From assembly GCA_965644315.1 (NCBI GenBank), contig CBFFRQ010000052.1:1-64000 (forward strand): DNA of 64,000 nucleotides, in the 5' to 3' direction. Source of the stretch: Caecitellus pseudoparvulus. Its lineage: Eukaryota; Protista; Bigyra: Bicosoecida. Below, in pieces: positions 1-9,383 of this stretch. Numbering within the stretch: position 1 is the stretch's first letter; every line of letters begins with the position of its first letter. The notes below the pieces were generated by a model that was not told where the DNA came from, searched no databases, and saw only the letters and a list, made by a program, of their open reading frames with translations. The position numbers and the translations under genes are program-made.

Positions 1-90
1 TTGCGCGGAGCTTCCGTGTGCACATAGCACCACATGCGGAGTGACGCGCGGCCCGCCCCACCCAGCCCTGCGACGACCTCCCATTCGCAG

Positions 91-3000
91 TGGTCAGAGC
101 TACGTGTACGCGAACTGCTCGCAGACTGCGCCTTTGGAGGTGGGTGTGGGGGAGGAGCTGTACGTTTCCGCGTTGCCGCAGGGTGGTTGGGAGGCTGGTG
201 TCAGCTGCTCCTGGACCATCACAGCGGCCACGCCGAAGAACCTGCGGGCTGATGCTATGTACATCGATGCCCCTGCAGCCACTCTCTACATCGATGTGCA
301 GTCGTTTGATGGGAGGTTCGAGACGAGGGAACTTGTGTCAACCCTCAACGTGCTTCAGAACAGGGCACGGCCGGGGACTGCCGTCACTGCTGGCCAAATT
401 GACTTGACCTTTACCCCTGGATCCATCACACCAACGTCCGGGCAAGGCTTTCAGTTCCGTTTCACGGCAACTGACGAGGCCCCGCCAGACTCACCTGGCT
501 TTCCTGCAGTGTCCAACAGGCCAACTCCATCTGGGACCCCCTCCGTGACCCCCTCCGTGTCTACCTCACCGTCCACCTCACCCAGCCCAAGCACCTTCCC
601 CGCATCAGGCACAGTGCTGGTGGACTGCCAAGACACAGCGCCCATCCGCCTGGGGCTCGGGGCACAGGCCATCATCCAGTACTACCAGGGAGATCCAGGC
701 GAGCTGCCGTCGTGGGGTGACTGTGCGTGGACGGTGGTGGGGGGAGCGGGTGCAAACATCCGGGCGACGTTGATGGCGTTTGACAGCAGCAGTTACTCCA
801 CGTTTGCCCGGTTTGAGTGGCATTCAGACTCTATGAACACGAACCGTATTCAGAGCCCGTTCACGTGGGGAGGCCGCAGCAGCACCAACGCGTTGGTCAT
901 GAGCTCTGCCAGTGACTTCACCATTGGCTTGACGCGCTCTTTTGCGACGTACCTGGACTTCACGCTGGTTGTGGAGGGGGTCAGCAGTGCGCCTGGCGCT
1001 CCGGCGTCTCCGAACCCATCTCCGACTCCGGCAGCCGCAAGTGGGACCCCAACGCCAACGCCAATGCCACTATCAGAAGGGGTCGTGTTCTTGGACAGTG
1101 TTTCAGAGCATACAGAGGTTCGATTGGGCATTGGAGGTGTGGTTTGGCTGCAGCCCTTCACCACTGCTCCTGGGCGACTGCTGCTGGGGGGTCCGAGTCA
1201 AACCTGGGGCATCACGGCCGGCCCATCTGTGCGCGTGCGCTACAGCATTGTCTGGCACGACTTCTCTGCAAACACCGAGCCAGCTCTCTGCAAACCGCGT
1301 CTGAATGGACAAAGTGATTGTTTGAGCCAGAGTGAGACCTCCTTGGGCTTATCAGGCTCTTTCAATGGGCGATTACAATTCTCCTGGACTTCGGGAGTTC
1401 GATATCAGCCTGCTGGCATGGCAGATGGCGGTTTCCTGATGCGCCTGGAGGGCATTCCCATCTCAGGCACCATCCCGTCGGCCACCCCCCCTCCAGCCGT
1501 GCTGCCAAGCCCTGCACCCGGCAGCGCTGTCGTGTCTGGTGCTGAGATTGTGGACGTGTCTGTGACGCCGTTCAACGCGACGCTGGTGCCGGGATCTGAG
1601 CTGACGATTCGCAGTCTTCGAGACATGCGACCACTTACGAGCGGAGGCGACTACAGCTGGTCTGTTCGTGTGGAGCCTGGAGCGTTCATTCGAGTGGAGA
1701 TCACGAAAGTTGTGAATGCTTCAGGTGGCGCAATTATGGTGTATGATGATAGCTTGCTTATCAAGTCTGTTGACTGGAGTTGGAGGTTGGCCCCATTGCA
1801 GCCTGGCACTGCTCCTGGGACAGGCATCTTTGCTGGCCCAGTTCAAATCCGAGCTTGGTCAGATAATTCTTACATTTCCCCTTTCGAGGTCAAGCTCCGG
1901 CACTGGAACATCGCCCCAGGCACGACGCCATCACCGTCGCCGTCGCCGAGTGTCACGCCGTCCATGTCGGCCACGCCCAGTGTCACGCCATCTCAGACAG
2001 CCTCACCATCTGTCACTCCATCATGGTCTGCCACTGCTTCAGTAAGCTCCTCTGGCTCGCCAAGCCCCTCCATGAGCAGCACTAGCTCGCCAACACGCGA
2101 CCCGACAAGCACTGCCATGTCCTTCACCCCACCGCCTGCCACCTCGGCAGCCGCCTCCCCGTCCACTGGCGCGTCTCCCTCATCCACACGCTCACCCACA
2201 CCCACTTCATCCCAGTCACCCTCCATGTCGCCGTCCATGTCCACGTCGCCGAGCCCCACTGCATCTGGCACCCCCCCCATGTCTGGGTACGCAGTGATGC
2301 TGCCGGTGCCAGGGTCCCCGACCCGCAAGCCGGTGCACCTGGGCAACTGCTCCTCCTGTGCGGCCAGCCTGCGCAGTGGGCAGGCAGGGGTGCCCTACGC
2401 TGGGGGCATGAACTACACGTGGATGCTGTCGCCTGAGCCGGGCATGTCTGTGCGCATCACGGTGCTGAGGCTGAACCTGAACACTGCTGGGGGCGACTCC
2501 CTGCGCATCGCGTGGGGTGCCGGTGCGGGTGGGGGCGGCACGCTGCGACGACGACGCCGGGCGTCATCTGCTGCGAGCGGGAGCGTGACGCTGACGGGGT
2601 CAAGCGTGGTGCCCTTCGGCAACTCGTCAGTGCCAGGGGACGCAGTGCTGCCGGCGCCGGTGTCAGTGAGCTTCCAGACGGGTGCAGGCGGTGGCGTGGG
2701 GGGGTATGGAGGCTTCGAGCTGGTGGGTCAGTCTGATGCGGGGAGTCCCGGGACGCCCGCTGGGCCTGGTCCCTCGCCGTCCAGCAGTCCGTCTGCAGGT
2801 CCATCTCCGTCGTCCACGGCGAGTGTGGCTGCGTCGAGCCTCGTACCGTCTCCGACTGCGTCTCCTGGGGGCCAGGCGGGTGCTGGTCAGGCTGGTCCTG
2901 GCAAGGAGGAGGAGGGCGGGCTGCCGCTGGGTGGCAGCCTTGGCATCGGTGCTGCTGCTCTGCTCGTGGTCGTGTTGGCTGGGGCTGCCATTCTGTGGTG

Positions 3001-3097
3001 GCGTCGGCAGTCTGCATCTCAACCTTCAGGCAGTGCTACTGCAGCGGAAGGAGTCGAGATGAAGGTTGTGTCGGACAACCCACTTCACAGTGTGTGA
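91..3097 (+). CDS. Single-pass cell-surface protein, copy 1 (5' exon outside window): four CUB-like beta domains, Ser/Thr/Pro mucin stalk, fifth CUB-like domain, TM helix, short tail
   Basis: ORF 41..3097. Acceptor ttcgcag ends at 90, matching the copy-2 acceptor. Repeated 'C.WT(I/V)...g..lr......F.l.f' pattern, PSxTPS linkers, TM LGIGAAALLVVVLAGAAILWW followed by RRQ. The CUB assignment is by eye. Confidence 0.8.
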
Positions 3098-3583
3098 AGT
3101 GGTCGTGCGTGAACAAGGTCCGTGAGCCGTCCGTGCCGTCTTCCCGTGGGCTGAATGCATGTCCTGGGTACTGTGATCTGGTTTGTTAGAGGTCTGAGTC
3201 TGTTGTCACATGTGCACATTTTGCTTGGGTCGCGGACAAGTTCGGTGCTGCGTTCCACACACGTTTCATCTTTGCTCTGGCAGCGCCGGAATGCGATGGT
3301 GCAATGAAGACAGCCAAGGACGGAGTTGTTGCAATGAGCCAGTGGTTTCGAAGTGAGTCTGTACTGAACGCTCAGCGTCTATCAGTGTGGGGGGATCGGG
3401 GGAGCGCAAGAGGCTCTGTCCGATTCTTTGCGCTTGTCCATGAGGTGCAGGATCATTATTGTTGTTTCATGGCTCACGCACAAACAACTCAACCTGCCGA
3501 TACCCTCCAGCCGGAGTCGACACATGCACTGATGAAATCTGGTTCCTGTGTGTTATCCTTCATCATTTCACTGGTTCATCAGT

Positions 3584-6500
3584 ATGGGAAGTGACCCACA
3601 CGCGGCCCGCAGCCGAGGGTTGAGCGCGGAAACTCGCCCTGTCCGCGGCGGCAACAGCAGGGCCTCCACACCAGCCCCCCAGGCGCTGCCTCGCCTTCTC
3701 TGCACGCTTGCATGCCTTTCATGCACCCTCCAAGGCGCCAGGTGCGTGGGAGCCCCTCTGCTGTGGCACAAACAGCGCGTGCAAGCTGCATGTTGAAGCT
3801 GTGCCGTCATTGCGCGGAGCTTCCATGTGCACAAAGCACCCCCCGCGGTGTGACGCGCTGGCCGCCCCACTCAGCCCTGCGACGACCTCCCATTCACAGT
3901 GGTCAGAGCTACGTGTACGCGAACTGCTCGCAGACTGCGCCTTTGGAGGTGGGTGTGGGGGAGGAGCTGTACGTTTCCGCGTTGCCGCAGGGTGGTTGGG
4001 AGGCTGGTGTCAGCTGCTCCTGGACCATCACAGCGGCCACGCCGAAGAACCTGCGGGCTGATGCTCTATTTGTGAGCGTCCCGTGGGCCACTCTCTACAT
4101 CGATGTGCAGTCAGACGGAGGGAGCATGGAAAGCAGGCAAGCCAGTTCCGCCACTGCCACGCTGCAGACTTTCTCCCCTGGAGGCGTTGCCGTCACAGCG
4201 GGACTGATGGAGTTGACCTTCACCCCTGGATCTCGGAGTCCGTCATCCGGGCAAGGCTTTCAGTTCCGTTTCACGGCAACTGACGAGGCCCCGCCAGACT
4301 CGCCTGGGGCCTCCGCCCCGTCCACGAAGCCCACTCCATCTGGGACCCCCTCCGTGACCCCTTCCGTGTCTACCTCACCGTCCACCTCACCCAGCCCAAG
4401 CACCTTCCCCGCATCAGGCACAGTGCTGGTGGACTGCCAAGACACAGCGCCCATCCGCCTGGGGCTCGGGGCACAGGCCATCATCCAGTACTACCAGGGA
4501 GATCCAGGCGAGCTGCCGTCGTGGGGTGACTGTGCGTGGACGGTGGTGGGGGGAGCGGGTGCAAACATCCGGGCGACGTTGATGGCGTTTGACAGCAGCG
4601 ACTACCGTACACTCGCCGAGTTTGAGTGGCACTCGGGCAGGCTCGTCAGCGAGCGTATTCAGAGCCCGTTCACGTGGGGAGGCCGCAGCAGCACCAACGC
4701 GTTGGTCATGAGCTCTGCCAGTGACTTCACCATTGGCTTGACGCGCTCTTTTGCGACGTACCTGGACTTCACGCTGGTTGTGGAGGGGGTCAGCAGTGCG
4801 CCTGGCGCTCCGGCGTCTCCGAACCCATCTCCAACCCCACCAGCCCCCAGTGAGACACCGACGCCAACACCAATGCCTCAGGAGCTGGGGACGCTGTACC
4901 TAGACAGTTTATCTTCCCAAAGCGAAGTGAACCTTGGCATTGGGGGTATGGTTTGGCTGCAGCCTTTCAACACGGCTCCTGGGCGACTGCTGCTGGGGGG
5001 TCCATACAAGCCTTTGGGCATCACGGCCGGCCCATCTGTGCGCGTGCGCTACAGCATCGTCTGGCACGACTTCTCTGCCACTAGTGGACCGCTTCTGTGC
5101 TTGTCTCAACCTTCTGGCCTGAATGCTTGCCGCAGTCGAAGCATGACGAGTCTGAGCTTGTCGGGGTCGTGGACCGGGACGAGGCGTGTGGTTTCATGGA
5201 CCCCGAACTCTGGGGGCAACCCTGCTGGGATGGTGAGCGGAGGGTTCCTGATGCGCCTGGAGGGCATTCCCATCTCAGGCACCATCCCGTCGGCCACCCC
5301 CCCTCCAGCCGTGCTGCCAAGCCCTGCACCCGGCAGCGCTGTCGTGTCTGGTGCTGAGATTGTGGACGTGTCTGTGACGCCGTTCAACGCGACGCTGGTG
5401 CCGGGGTCTGAGCTGACGGTTCGCTCTTTACGAAACATGGGCCCACTGAGCAATGGTGGGACGTACGAGTGGTCTGTTCGTGTGGAGCCTGGAGCGTTCA
5501 TTCGAGTGGAGATCACGCGCATGGTGACAACACAAGGTGGTCTCCTGATTTTTTATGACGATGGAGTGCTGGCCAAGAGCTTGACAGGGATGGACGGCCT
5601 GCAGCCATTGCAGCCTGGCTCTGCTCCTGGGACGGGCATCTTTGCTGGTCCACTTCGGCTCGTTGTTTCAGACTCCCTCGCAATTTCCCCTTTCGAGGTC
5701 AAGCTCCGGCACTGGAACATCGCCCCAGGCACGACGCCATCACCGTCGCCGTCGCCGAGTGTCACGCCGTCCATGTCGGCCACGCCCAGTGTCACGCCAT
5801 CTCAGACAGCCTCACCATCTGTCACTCCATCTCAAACGGCGTCGTCGTCCTCGACAACAACACAGACACCTACCGCGTCAGTGTCTGCGCTGTCCACGCC
5901 CAGCTCCACTGCCACGACGAGTGCCACAGCCACGACAAGTGCCAGCACATCTGGTACCCCGTCTGTCTCTCAGACTCCTGCGACGACAAGCTCCCCCACA
6001 TCGTCAGTGTCGACGTCGCCCTCGCAGACTGGCACAATGACCGCGACGGCGTCTGCTACAGCCTCGAGCTCGCCGAGCCCCTCCATGAGCAGCACTTCAG
6101 CGCCGTCACACGATCCGGCAATCTCGCCAACCGCCTCATCATCTTCCACATCCCCGCCCACGGCCTCGGCAGCCGCCTCCCCGTCCACTGGCGCGTCTCC
6201 CTCATCCACACGCTCACCCACACCCACTTCATCCCAGTCACCCTCCATGTCGCCGTCCATGTCCACGTCGCCGAGCCCCACTGCATCTGGCACCCCCCCC
6301 ATGTCTGGGTACGCAGTGATGCTGCCGGTGCCAGGGTCCCCGACCCGCAAGCCGGTGCACCTGGGCAACTGCTCCTCCTGTGCGGCCAGCCTGCGCAGTG
6401 GGCAGGCAGGGGTGCCCTACGCTGGGGGCATGAACTACACGTGGATGCTGTCGCCTGAGCCGGGCATGTCTGTGCGCATCACGGTGCTGAGGCTGAACCT

Positions 6501-7119
6501 GAACACTGCTGGGGGCGACTCCCTGCGCATCGCGTGGGGTGCCGGTGCGGGTGGGGGCGGCACGCTGCGACGACGACGCCGGGCGTCATCTGCTGCGAGC
6601 GGGAGCGTGACGCTGACGGGGTCAAGCGTGGTGCCCTTCGGCAACTCGTCAGTGCCAGGGGACGCAGTGCTGCCGGCGCCGGTGTCAATGAGCTTCCAGA
6701 CGGGTGCAGGCGGTGGCGTGGGGGGGTATGGAGGCTTCGAGCTGGTGGGTCAGTCTGATGCGGGGAGTCCCGGGACGCCCGCTGGGCCTGGTCCCTCGCC
6801 GTCCAGCAGTCCGTCTGCAGGTCCATCTCCGTCGTCCACGGCGAGTGTGGCTGCGTCGAGCCTCGTACCGTCTCCGACTGCGTCTCCTGGGGGCCAGGCG
6901 GGTGCTGGTCAGGCTGGTCCTGGCAAGGAGGAGGAGGGCGGGCTGCCGCTGGGTGGCAGCCTTGGCATCGGTGCTGCTGCTCTGCTCGTGGTCGTGTTGG
7001 CTGGGGCTGCCATTCTGTGGTGGCGTCGGCAGTCTGCATCTCAACCTTCAGGCAGTGCTACTGCAGCGGAAGGAGTCGAGATGAAGGTTGTGTCGGACAA
7101 CCCACTTCACAGTGTGTGA
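3584..7119 (+). CDS. Single-pass cell-surface protein, copy 2 (tandem paralog); exons 3584..3741 and 3900..7119
   Basis: Exon 1 MGSDPH...LPRLLCTLACLSCTLQGA is signal-peptide-like. Donor GTGCGT at 3742 and acceptor cacag at 3899 join in frame (AG+T=Ser, then GQSYVY). Same architecture as copy 1 with a stalk about 70 aa longer. Confidence 0.82.
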
Positions 7120-7332
7120 AGTGGTCGTGCGTGAACAAGGTCCGTGAGCCGTCCGTGCCGTCTTCCCGTGGGCTGAATGCATGCCCGGGCTACAAGTGTG
7201 GACAGGCTCGGTCCGGACCCAGACACCCTGGGGACTGCGATTATGAAACTGTCGAAATGTGGATCAAAACTCGCCCCCCTCAGACAGGTACGCATGTGCT
7301 AGTGTTGTGAGAGTGAGCTTGGCACCTTCACC

Positions 7333-9383
7333 ATGGCCGCAACAACGGCCAGCGTCCCAGCTGGCAGTGCAGCTGCTGCGCCACCAGTGCCAGGTGGCAG
7401 CGCGGCTGCACCTCCTGCGCCCGCCTCAGCCTCGAACAAGCCTGTACAGATTGTGCGAATCTCAGATGATGGAGCCAGTTTCACCCTCGTCGAAAGTGCC
7501 CTTGCAGAGGTGCTGGACAAGGTGCGCGGGGTGCTTCGAGCAGGTGCAGTGCATTTCGGTGTCACTGTCGATGTCCACGGCGCAGGTACCCCGAGGAATG
7601 AAGGTGTCCGTAGTTTCCATCGTTGGGGCTTTCCGCACTGGTAAAAGCTTTCTGCTGGATCTCCTCCTACGCTACCTCAGCTCGCCTGAGGGCAGCAAGG
7701 CTTCTTCAGGTGCGTGTGCCCAGTGCACTGGCGTTGTGGCCGGCCATCACACCCCGCACTCTCATGCCCCGCCCCTTTCTCGAGCAGCCCTTCCAGTTTG
7801 TGACGGCTCATCATCGTGGCTCCAGAAAGAGGGAGTTGTGGAAGGGCAAGCAGCACAAGGAGAGCAGAGTTCAGAGAGCACGGGTGGCTTCTCGTGGAGG
7901 TCTGGGCGTGAGCGCTGCACGACGGTGAGTTCTGCTTGGCGTGGGCGAGCATGGCAGGGAGCATGGCTGCAAGGCAACAAACCGAGCCCGTGTGCACTCT
8001 CAGGGTATTTGGCTGTGGAGTGAGCCGTTCTTGCGGGAGCTGCCCAGCACGAGCGGCGCCTCGCAGCGTGGCGAGACAGTGGCGGTGCTGTTGATGGACA
8101 CGCAGGGCATGTTTGACAGTGAGACGAGTCAGATGCTGACGGCCAGCATCTTTGGGCTGTCGACTCTCTTCTCCAGCATGCTCGTGTACAATGTCTCCTC
8201 GCAAGTGCGGGAGGATCACCTGCAGCTCCTCTCCCTCTTCTCGGAGTACGGCCGGCTGGCGTACTTCCAGGGTAACGACGCAGAGGAGCAGCATGCCCCC
8301 TTCCAGCACCTGCAGTTCCTTGTTCGGGACGCCACTGCGCAGGATGTGTCATGGAGAGATGCCACGCTGCCCGTTGAAGCTCTGCGTAGGGACAACGTGC
8401 GCCTGCTGGACAGCGCGCTGCGGCAGCGCTCCCTGGAGGACCTTGCAGCTACACGGGAACAGATCCACACCTGCTTCGAGCAGTTGACGGCTTTCCAGCT
8501 CCCACACCCAGGGCACGATGTGTCAGAAGGCACATTTGGCGGCAGCTTGGCTGAAGTGCGGCCAGCCTTCCTGCGCGCGATGGAGCTGTACGTGCACGAG
8601 TTGTTCACGGAGCGGCTGGCTCCCAAGAAGGTGAATGGCGCACCAGTGACAGCGCGCCAGCTCAAGTCTCTCATGGTGCAGTACTGTGCTATATTCGCTG
8701 ACGGCAGGACTCCCGAGCCGCAGTCCATGCTCAGCGCCACGGCTCAAGGCACCAACACGGCCGCAGTGGAGGAGGGGCAGCTGGACTATGAAGAGGCAAT
8801 GGACGAAGCGCTGCAGAGTGGCGAGTATGTGGACGACAAGGTCCTGGCCGCCCACCACAGAGCTGCAGAGGAAGCTGCCCTGCAGCGGTTCGACTCCATG
8901 GCCAATTTCGGGCCCCAGGCAGCCAAGGCAGCGGCCAAGGACCGCCTGAAGGGTTTCATCAGCCGCCAGTGGGCCCTGACAGCTGAGCTGAATGACGCTC
9001 GGAACCCGTGGAAGAACTTTGAAGTGTACGCGCTGGCGCTCAGCATCGTCGTGGGCGCCTTCATGGTGCGGCAGCTGCTGGAGCTGACCTGCTCCTCCTG
9101 GTCCTCAGTGTGCCACCGCAGCTCGGCCTTCCTTGCTTTCTTGTACACGACGGTGCTTGCGCTGTCTGTGGTCATGGCTGTCGTGACGGGCCAGCCAGCG
9201 GTCCAGCGTGCTCGCAGCATGCTCATGCCGCTGCTGTCCACTGGGCAAGCTGCGGTGGCAGCCCTGGTGGAGGCAAACCAGGTCAACCAGCCCTCCGTTG
9301 CACCTCTGCGACGCAATGGCTCTGACCGTGCATTGAGGCGGCAGGGATCAAGCCTGCGCAAGCGCCGTGGGGTTCAAGAGTAG
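7333..9383 (+). CDS. ATL: Atlastin (GBP-family ER membrane-fusion GTPase), multi-exon
   Basis: P-loop GAFRTGKS, GFSWRSG.ER.TT|GIWLWSEPF, DTQG, FLVRD, LPHPG, two C-terminal TM helices. Introns 7522..7585, from ~7709 and from ~7925. Confidence 0.9.

Follow-up and report, generated by a model that had tools for sequence, protein, structure and literature searches.

The window analyzed here comprises the first 64 kb (64,000 nucleotides) of contig C52 (CBFFRQ010000052.1) in the genome assembly of the bicosoecid protist Caecitellus pseudoparvulus (GCA_965644315.1; 30.6 Mb, 215 contigs, approximately 63% G+C). Its first 7.1 kb are filled by two long open reading frames (ORFs) on one strand, referred to here as copy 1 and copy 2. 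They are probably the only two members of an old tandem duplication of a lineage-specific gene for a type I membrane glycoprotein, and are under partial concerted evolution. The initial annotation of this stretch had recognized a tandem of type I membrane proteins that share a framework, which is upheld here, and had assigned them to a variable receptor or antigen family, an assignment that is weighed below. When the window is aligned to itself by BLASTN, positions 1-1269 match 3810-5078 at 87% identity, 1409-2022 match 5221-5831 at 86% and 2049-3171 match 6062-7193 at 97%. Positions 1-3171 are a diverged repeat of 3810-7193, and the copies lie head to tail on the same strand, about 4.0 kb apart. 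The features of the locus are the following:

1-89, + strand: downstream (3') portion of the copy 1 5' intron, which matches 3810-3899 of copy 2 at 89% identity and closes with the acceptor ...cattcgcag (87-89); the contig starts at position 1
90-3097, + strand: copy 1 exon 2; five CUB-like domains, Ser/Thr/Pro linkers, a short stalk, a transmembrane helix (2939-3001) and a 31-amino-acid tail; stop codon 3095-3097
3098-3171, + strand: 3' flank of copy 1, probable 3' untranslated region; still homologous to copy 2, with about 65 nt past the stop identical and divergence beyond
3172-3583, + strand: unique spacer of 412 bp that probably holds the copy 2 promoter; no other match in the genome
3584-3741, + strand: predicted copy 2 exon 1; opens with an ATG, has 52 codons plus 2 nt and closes with a signal-peptide-like stretch, LPRLLCTLACLSCTLQGA
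3742-3899, + strand: predicted copy 2 intron; 158 nt, GTGCGT donor, C-rich tract, CAG acceptor (3897-3899), phase 2
3900-7119, + strand: copy 2 exon 2; five domains (D1-D5), stalk, transmembrane helix and tail
3901-4290, + strand: copy 2 D1, the modelled domain; ten-strand beta sandwich with a CUB fold
4414-4794, + strand: copy 2 D2, CUB-like by alignment
4882-5274, + strand: copy 2 D3, CUB-like by alignment
5338-5727, + strand: copy 2 D4, CUB-like by alignment
5728-6297, + strand: copy 2 mucin-like stalk, with 68 codons more than the stalk of copy 1
6298-6786, + strand: copy 2 D5
6961-7023, + strand: copy 2 transmembrane helix
7024-7116, + strand: copy 2 tail

Identical and diverged blocks between the two copies

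A protein-guided codon alignment of the copies divides the coding sequence into ten constant and eight variable blocks (coordinates are those of copy 1 unless stated otherwise):

92-256, 437-490, 554-790, 845-1021, 1208-1246, 1433-1591, 1658-1705, 1874-2020, 2144-2665 and 2669-3094, + strand: constant blocks
257-436, 491-553, 791-844, 1022-1207, 1247-1432, 1592-1657, 1706-1873 and the stalk 2021-2143, + strand: variable blocks
4066-4245 of copy 2 (copy 1 257-436), + strand: variable block 1, in the C-terminal half of D1; 58% nucleotide identity, synonymous divergence (dS) 1.2, nonsynonymous divergence (dN) 0.48
4600-4653 of copy 2 (copy 1 791-844), + strand: variable block in D2; 54% nucleotide identity
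4831-5244 of copy 2 (copy 1 1022-1207 and 1247-1432), + strand: two variable blocks that, on either side of an identical 39-nt core (5017-5055), take up most of D3 together with its N-terminal linker; a conserved Cys-x9-Cys loop lies within them
5404-5682 of copy 2 (copy 1 1592-1657 and 1706-1873), + strand: pair of variable blocks in D4, on either side of an identical 48-nt core
6166-7193 of copy 2 (copy 1 2144-3171), + strand: longest homogenized tract, which runs from the last part of the stalk through D5, the transmembrane helix and the tail into the 3' flank, with one V/M difference in its coding part

The constant blocks total 658 codons (1974 nt) and carry 0 differences, while nucleotide identity in the variable blocks is 54-76% and amino acid identity 44-76%, with the reading frame kept. 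Across domains 1-4, whose variable blocks total 300 codons, there are only two insertions or deletions, each of a single codon; in the stalk, copy 2 has 68 codons inserted relative to copy 1. From D5 through the transmembrane helix to the tail, the copies differ by just one V/M residue, the nonsynonymous codon at 2666 (6688 in copy 2) being the single break in the last kilobase. Identical positions are clustered well beyond random expectation: when the 390 differences were shuffled 5000 times, no identical run was longer than 102 nt, whereas the longest one in the actual alignment measures 524 nt (P < 1/5000) and seven runs reach at least 100 nt. The alternation of identical blocks with diverged, in-frame and length-conserved ones had been described in the initial annotation and is recovered almost block for block; the peptide pair given there as an example, with both Cys kept, is found in the alignment, and the near invariance of the membrane-proximal domain, transmembrane helix and tail likewise holds, with the one V/M residue as the only change. 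The block limits given for copy 1 were good to about 30 nt, with the correction that positions 1-89 are not coding and form the 3' part of an intron that is 89% identical between the copies.

No differences occur at the approximately 545 synonymous sites of the constant blocks. In the variable blocks, the proportion of synonymous differences (pS) is 0.59 and dS is about 1.15, which is saturated and in some blocks unmeasurably high, against a proportion of nonsynonymous differences (pN) of 0.31 and a dN of 0.39. Because the identical blocks take in the Ser/Pro linkers, which evolve fast, the identity of the constant blocks stems from sequence exchange and not from constraint alone. Identity is moreover graded, from 100% in the constant blocks over 89% in the intron, 83% in exon 1 and 70-76% in some blocks down to 54%, which argues for repeated conversions of different age. 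The hallmarks of interlocus gene conversion are present: tracts free of synonymous change stand beside tracts of high pS beyond chance, the paralogs are close and on the same strand, and the converted tracts are enriched in G+C. That gene conversion homogenizes the copies had been proposed from the start, and the contrast between some 545 unchanged synonymous sites and neighboring blocks with a pS of 0.59 agrees with it.

In the homogenized blocks, the G+C content at third codon positions (GC3) amounts to 0.72, compared with 0.71-0.83 in neighboring genes and with 0.55 (copy 1) and 0.64 (copy 2) in the escaped blocks. Such a contrast would fit GC-biased conversion confined to the stretches in which the copies can still pair. 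As the GC3 of the constant blocks equals the local gene average, the escaped blocks may equally well have drifted towards AT. A separate observation is that the third positions of the variable blocks are AT-richer in copy 1 (257-1873 vs 4066-5682); copy 1, which carries a transposon in its intron (see below), may face a weaker codon or expression constraint.

The diverged blocks show the marks of age. Pooled over the variable blocks, the dN/dS ratio (omega) is 0.34 (bootstrap 0.25-0.45) and pN/pS is 0.52, both being pairwise values from two sequences. Within the variable blocks of domains 1-4, 171 of the 300 codons are identical in amino acid, and 55 of the 119 fourfold sites in these codons nevertheless differ; Gly and Pro residues are 90% conserved. 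Saturated dS together with synonymous differences at amino-acid-identical codons indicates that the divergence is ancient and under purifying selection, rather than recent hypervariation. The diversifying selection invoked in the initial annotation thus finds no support in a dN/dS of this size alongside saturated synonymous sites.

The mosaic is partial concerted evolution and not hypermutation. In the mechanism we propose, the pair would repeatedly swap sequence through interlocus gene conversion. Recent conversion would have wiped every difference, including the synonymous ones, from roughly two thirds of the coding sequence as well as from the first approximately 65 nt of the 3' flank. The remaining approximately 340 aligned codons, with their saturated synonymous sites, would long have escaped conversion, and purifying selection would maintain the amino acid sequence, the length and the Cys/Gly/Pro framework of these escaped blocks.

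Domain architecture and predicted fold of the products

In each product, Ser/Thr/Pro-rich linkers separate five domains, each some 130 residues long. There are also a mucin-like stalk and one transmembrane helix, followed by RRQ and a 31-residue tail, with five to six N-glycosylation sequons per product. The domains share only 17-20% mutual identity in an alignment in which G1, G36, R52 and F120 are the only invariant columns; D4 and D5 find each other by BLASTP at E 0.004. A structure prediction with AlphaFold2 for D1-D4 as a single sequence was unusable (pLDDT 39) and was replaced by a run on a single domain. With nine internal-repeat sequences as the alignment, AlphaFold2 yielded a D1 model with pLDDT 87, pTM 0.84 and ten strands. 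A Foldseek search of the PDB with this model returned CUB domains as its first 44 matches (E 7e-6 to 1e-3, TM 0.55-0.62; best 1spp_B, E 7e-6), among them spermadhesins, Kremen, PCPE-1, C1r and neuropilins, and all rows of a shape search in the ESM Atlas were CUB-domain proteins (TM 0.63-0.67). Weak leads in sequence point the same way: cubilin is the best PDB profile match (E 0.089), a spermadhesin follows at E 1.3, and CUB clusters appear in a language-model search. At the level of the predicted model, the CUB fold, a beta sandwich of about 110-130 residues, is confirmed for D1.

CUB domains typically have four cysteines paired in two disulfides (C1-C2, C3-C4); here the cysteines are distributed unevenly. 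D1 and D2 hold the first CUB pair (Cys...Cys-x-W), D3 has a local Cys-x9-Cys, D4 has none and D5 has a Cys-x2-Cys near its start. No acidic column is conserved across the five aligned domains that would correspond to the Ca2+-binding Glu/Asp/Asp site; this site is typical of only a subset of CUB domains. In the secondary structure of the D1 model, the variable block spans five consecutive strands with the loops between and after them, at both ends of the sandwich, which suggests a segment defined by recombination rather than a surface patch. Clustering of the variable residues on one face of each domain had initially been put forward as a check; as far as secondary structure tells, the variable block of D1 is instead a contiguous sequence segment that includes core strands. 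Radical replacements in D1 affect 15 of 32 loop residues and 5 of 28 strand residues, the strands being mostly identical or conservatively replaced.

Searches outside the genome found no relatives of the pair, either in a word search of 5.8 billion proteins with residues 64-672 and 860-1135 or in metagenome contigs scanned with D5, the transmembrane helix and the tail. The sole match in an exhaustive HMMER search of D1-D4 against 1.84 billion representatives was a bacterial FN3-repeat protein, which was judged spurious because only a short GPLSN..TY.W.VR motif, repeated five times, was matched. Two further motifs may be of interest. An invariant RRRRR run (2546-2560 and 6568-6582) in an apparent loop of D5 could be a kexin/furin-type processing or shedding site. 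The tail motif GVEM...(V/Q)(S/V)DNPL (3048-3094 and 7070-7116) also occurs in an unrelated mucin-like type I membrane protein (C34:152505-152660, E 0.03) and could be a sorting or endocytosis signal common to the surface proteins of this organism.

Considering their architecture, the products are probably cell-surface adhesion or ligand-recognition proteins. They would present two distal binding surfaces on a shared stalk, anchor and cytoplasmic signal.

Left edge of the pair and size of the family

In copy 2, the ATG at 3584 lies in a separate frame from the long ORF, and splicing at 3742/3899 would join it in phase to SGQSYVY... at 3900. A genome search with the region upstream of copy 2 found a segment of contig C18 (C18:1342860-1343030) that is 83% identical to 3635-3808. 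This counterpart of exon 1 is open in the corresponding frame, which contains an ATG, and it shares the donor. The homology of C18 to copy 2 ends at 3808, and position 1 of C52 aligns to 3810. Identity between the copies rises from 83% in exon 1 (3584-3741 vs C18:1342800-1342963), where the first approximately 17 codons cannot be aligned, to 89% in the intron and to 100% at the start of exon 2, so that the limits of the mature transcript are not those of homogenization. On this sequence evidence, exon 1 of copy 1 and the 5' part of its intron sit on contig C18, beyond a complete transposon. Two features of C18 are relevant:

C18:1340628-1342253, - strand: Sin1/TORC2-subunit-like gene (CRIM and SIN1_PH domains), left neighbor of the pair, upstream of copy 1 exon 1
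C18:1343033-1348043, to the last base of C18: complete PIF/Harbinger transposon of 5,011 bp, in the 5' intron of copy 1, joining position 1 of the window

The transposon encodes a transposase with a DDE_Tnp_4 domain (E 8e-13) and a second ORF of 620 amino acids, and has imperfect terminal inverted repeats of 17-18 bp, beginning GGCCGTGTCTCATTGAG, with 3-bp CWG/CNG target duplications. The genome has at least 16 copies with 100% identity, a large number of which lie at contig ends, and such identity implies recent activity. Many contigs, including C18, start or stop exactly at the transposon termini, from which we infer that C18 and C52 are neighbors; the break between them is due to the assembler stopping at the transposon inside the copy 1 intron, whose predicted length is then about 5.2 kb. 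An unrelated Sin1 gene directly upstream of copy 1 exon 1 means that the array stops on the left and has exactly two members. It had been suggested that the array may go on to the left of the window, which is not so.

A gene model without the intron (ATG at 3712, continuous ORF of 1135 amino acids) was ranked lower, since it lacks a signal peptide, the transposon in copy 1 would interrupt the ORF, and the GTGCGT...CAG intron fits the local type. Donors of the GTGCG type are also found in the short introns of the neighboring gene directly downstream of the pair (7333-9383, + strand). This gene encodes a large GTPase resembling guanylate-binding proteins (Pfam GBP, E 1e-29, and GBP_C) and has three short 5' introns with the donors GTGCGC, GTGCGT and GTGAGT.

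DNA, protein and domain-profile searches of the whole 30.6-Mb assembly revealed no further copies or donor fragments beyond the two genes, the only matches of the domain profile being the ten domains of these genes. An ORF of 5974 amino acids on contig C29 (E 0.002) was not accepted as a paralog, as its match falls on a Ser/Pro linker. The Pfam CUB profile PF00431 of clan CL0164 had a single match in the genome, in an open frame of 5895 amino acids that is unrelated to the pair (C69:643316-643606). The variable receptor or antigen family of the initial annotation is therefore reduced to two copies without silent cassettes and with an omega of 0.34; two copies only, with a dN/dS well below 1, had been named there as the outcome that would speak against it, and this is what the whole-assembly search and the codon analysis found.

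Alternative readings and related systems

The diverged blocks may persist for either of two reasons: selection against convertants, if the pair serves two useful specificities, or a divergence too high for the copies to pair. The first has been formulated as divergent, subfunctionalizing selection, in which conversion sweeps the whole gene and convertants in the variable blocks are purged since two ligand specificities are needed; the diverged blocks would then be selected islands, an idea also put forward for other converted paralogs. Within a gene of 3 kb, eight diverged tracts alternate with at least nine that show no difference, the identical cores of 39 and 48 nt within diverged domains would easily be lost by drift, and the diverged blocks strictly keep their length and framework. 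A neutral account gives the same picture, however, as a block that is more than about 20% diverged cannot pair and permanently escapes, and two sequences cannot separate selection from neutral escape. We regard divergent selection as possible, though not the likelier course.

A more specific and rather unlikely version is a fixed recognition pair with two specificities (e.g., for gametes, kin or prey), whose diverged CUB segments are shielded from conversion by balancing or divergent selection. If this were true, populations would carry further distinct versions of these blocks on an invariant scaffold, and the pair would be a protist locus for self/non-self or partner recognition built from CUB domains.

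Partial concerted evolution of a mere pair also has to be set against a variable receptor or variant-antigen system, in which diversifying selection on surface blocks and cassette shuffling among many copies or alleles serve the recognition of prey, virus or self. The sharp-bordered mosaic is real, the distal domains vary while the membrane-proximal domain is constant, 89 of the 129 replacements in the variable blocks are non-conservative, and in two short windows pN comes near pS. Such a system is nonetheless improbable: the assembly holds two copies and no silent cassettes, and the array ends on the left at the unrelated Sin1 gene. The saturated dS, the omega of 0.34 and the synonymous change at amino-acid-identical codons speak for old divergence, and the variable segments are long and contiguous and include core strands, unlike loop patches on one face. 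Less probable still is an assembly artefact, either divergent haplotypes joined in tandem or constant blocks made identical by polishing with cross-mapped reads: the contig does open inside copy 1, and breaks at 5-kb repeats betray limited read or link length, but the flanks differ (Sin1 beside copy 1 exon 1 vs a 412-bp spacer before copy 2 and the GBP-like gene after it), the stalks are 68 codons apart, the contig break is fully accounted for by the transposon ending at the last base of C18, and polishing might lift 98-99% identity to 100% without creating a contrast of 100% vs 55%.

Several points weigh against our interpretation of the locus as a glycoprotein pair under partial concerted evolution. 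Both the tandem layout and the exact 100% identity of the constant blocks are taken from the assembly. Exon 1, the intron and the signal peptide are predicted from DNA, and the hydrophobic stretch of exon 1 is unusually distant (about 33 residues) from the ATG. In two windows of 15 codons, pN is near or about equal to pS (0.54 vs 0.51 at 1754-1798; 0.50 vs 0.66 at 317-361); given the saturation, these windows are no evidence either way. A pairwise omega below 1 would also be compatible with positive selection at a minority of sites. The CUB-like nature of D2-D5 is suggested by their alignment to D1 at 17-20% identity. The CUB-like domains of the initial annotation stand at the level of fold, through the D1 model and its matches in the PDB and the ESM Atlas, and fail at the level of the Pfam CUB sequence profile: the whole protein matches no Pfam family at E ≤ 1, and D1, D2 and D5 alone match none at E ≤ 0.1. 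Finally, the presumed role in adhesion or recognition is read from architecture.

Three groups of known systems offer points of comparison. The D1 model superposes on the CUB domains of metazoan multi-CUB proteins (cubilin, neuropilin a1/a2, CDCP1, CSMD/SEZ6, PCPE-1, C1r/C1s/MASP and spermadhesins), and the Cys...Cys-x-W of D1 and D2 lies at the position of the first CUB disulfide. With CDCP1 and neuropilin, the pair further shares the arrangement of several CUB units on a type I membrane anchor. The CUB units of metazoan proteins such as these bind protein or glycan ligands. The pair differs from the metazoan proteins in having neither detectable sequence homology to them nor the conserved acidic residues for Ca2+, in its linkers, which are mucin-like Ser/Thr/Pro tracts instead of EGF, Sushi or LDLa modules, and in its unicellular eukaryotic host.

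Partial concerted evolution by interlocus gene conversion is known from the globin, opsin and RHD/RHCE pairs. In tandem arrays of Trypanosoma brucei, homogenization and differentiation are reported to coexist in one locus (Jackson 2007, PMC1855330), and partial concerted evolution is also found in the Gal/GalNAc lectin genes of Entamoeba (PMC3125142) and in Caenorhabditis paralogs (PMC3966223). The pair resembles these partially homogenized tandem paralogs in its head-to-tail arrangement, its tracts of full identity that include synonymous sites, and the sharp borders of these tracts. It differs in that the contrast is unusually stark and finely interleaved (0% vs approximately 45% nucleotide difference, with at least nine identical tracts in 3 kb) and in being an orphan gene with no outgroup.

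Variant-antigen and recognition families such as trypanosome VSG, Plasmodium var, Giardia VSP and Dictyostelium tgrB1/tgrC1 are similar in that they are type I or otherwise anchored surface glycoproteins with a conserved proximal and a diverged distal part that undergo segmental conversion. Such families comprise tens to thousands of copies or many alleles, with silent donors and an elevated dN/dS; the pair, on the contrary, has two copies, no donors and an omega of 0.34. The tgrB1/tgrC1 genes form a divergently transcribed, heterotypic ligand-receptor pair for allorecognition; their members are heterotypic, whereas those described here are near-identical twins.

The locus opens no new class of variable receptor. 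It adds an orphan pair of surface glycoproteins with five domains of CUB fold from a unicellular eukaryote, in which both the fold and the evolutionary process are of known kinds. The fold is recognizable only by structure prediction seeded with the internal repeats of the protein itself, an approach that is useful for orphan repeat proteins. The pair is also a very clean case of partial concerted evolution, in which even a single domain can combine perfectly homogenized tracts with tracts that diverged long ago. Given further strains or sister species, the locus would make a good natural experiment on what halts gene conversion, be it selection or mere sequence divergence.

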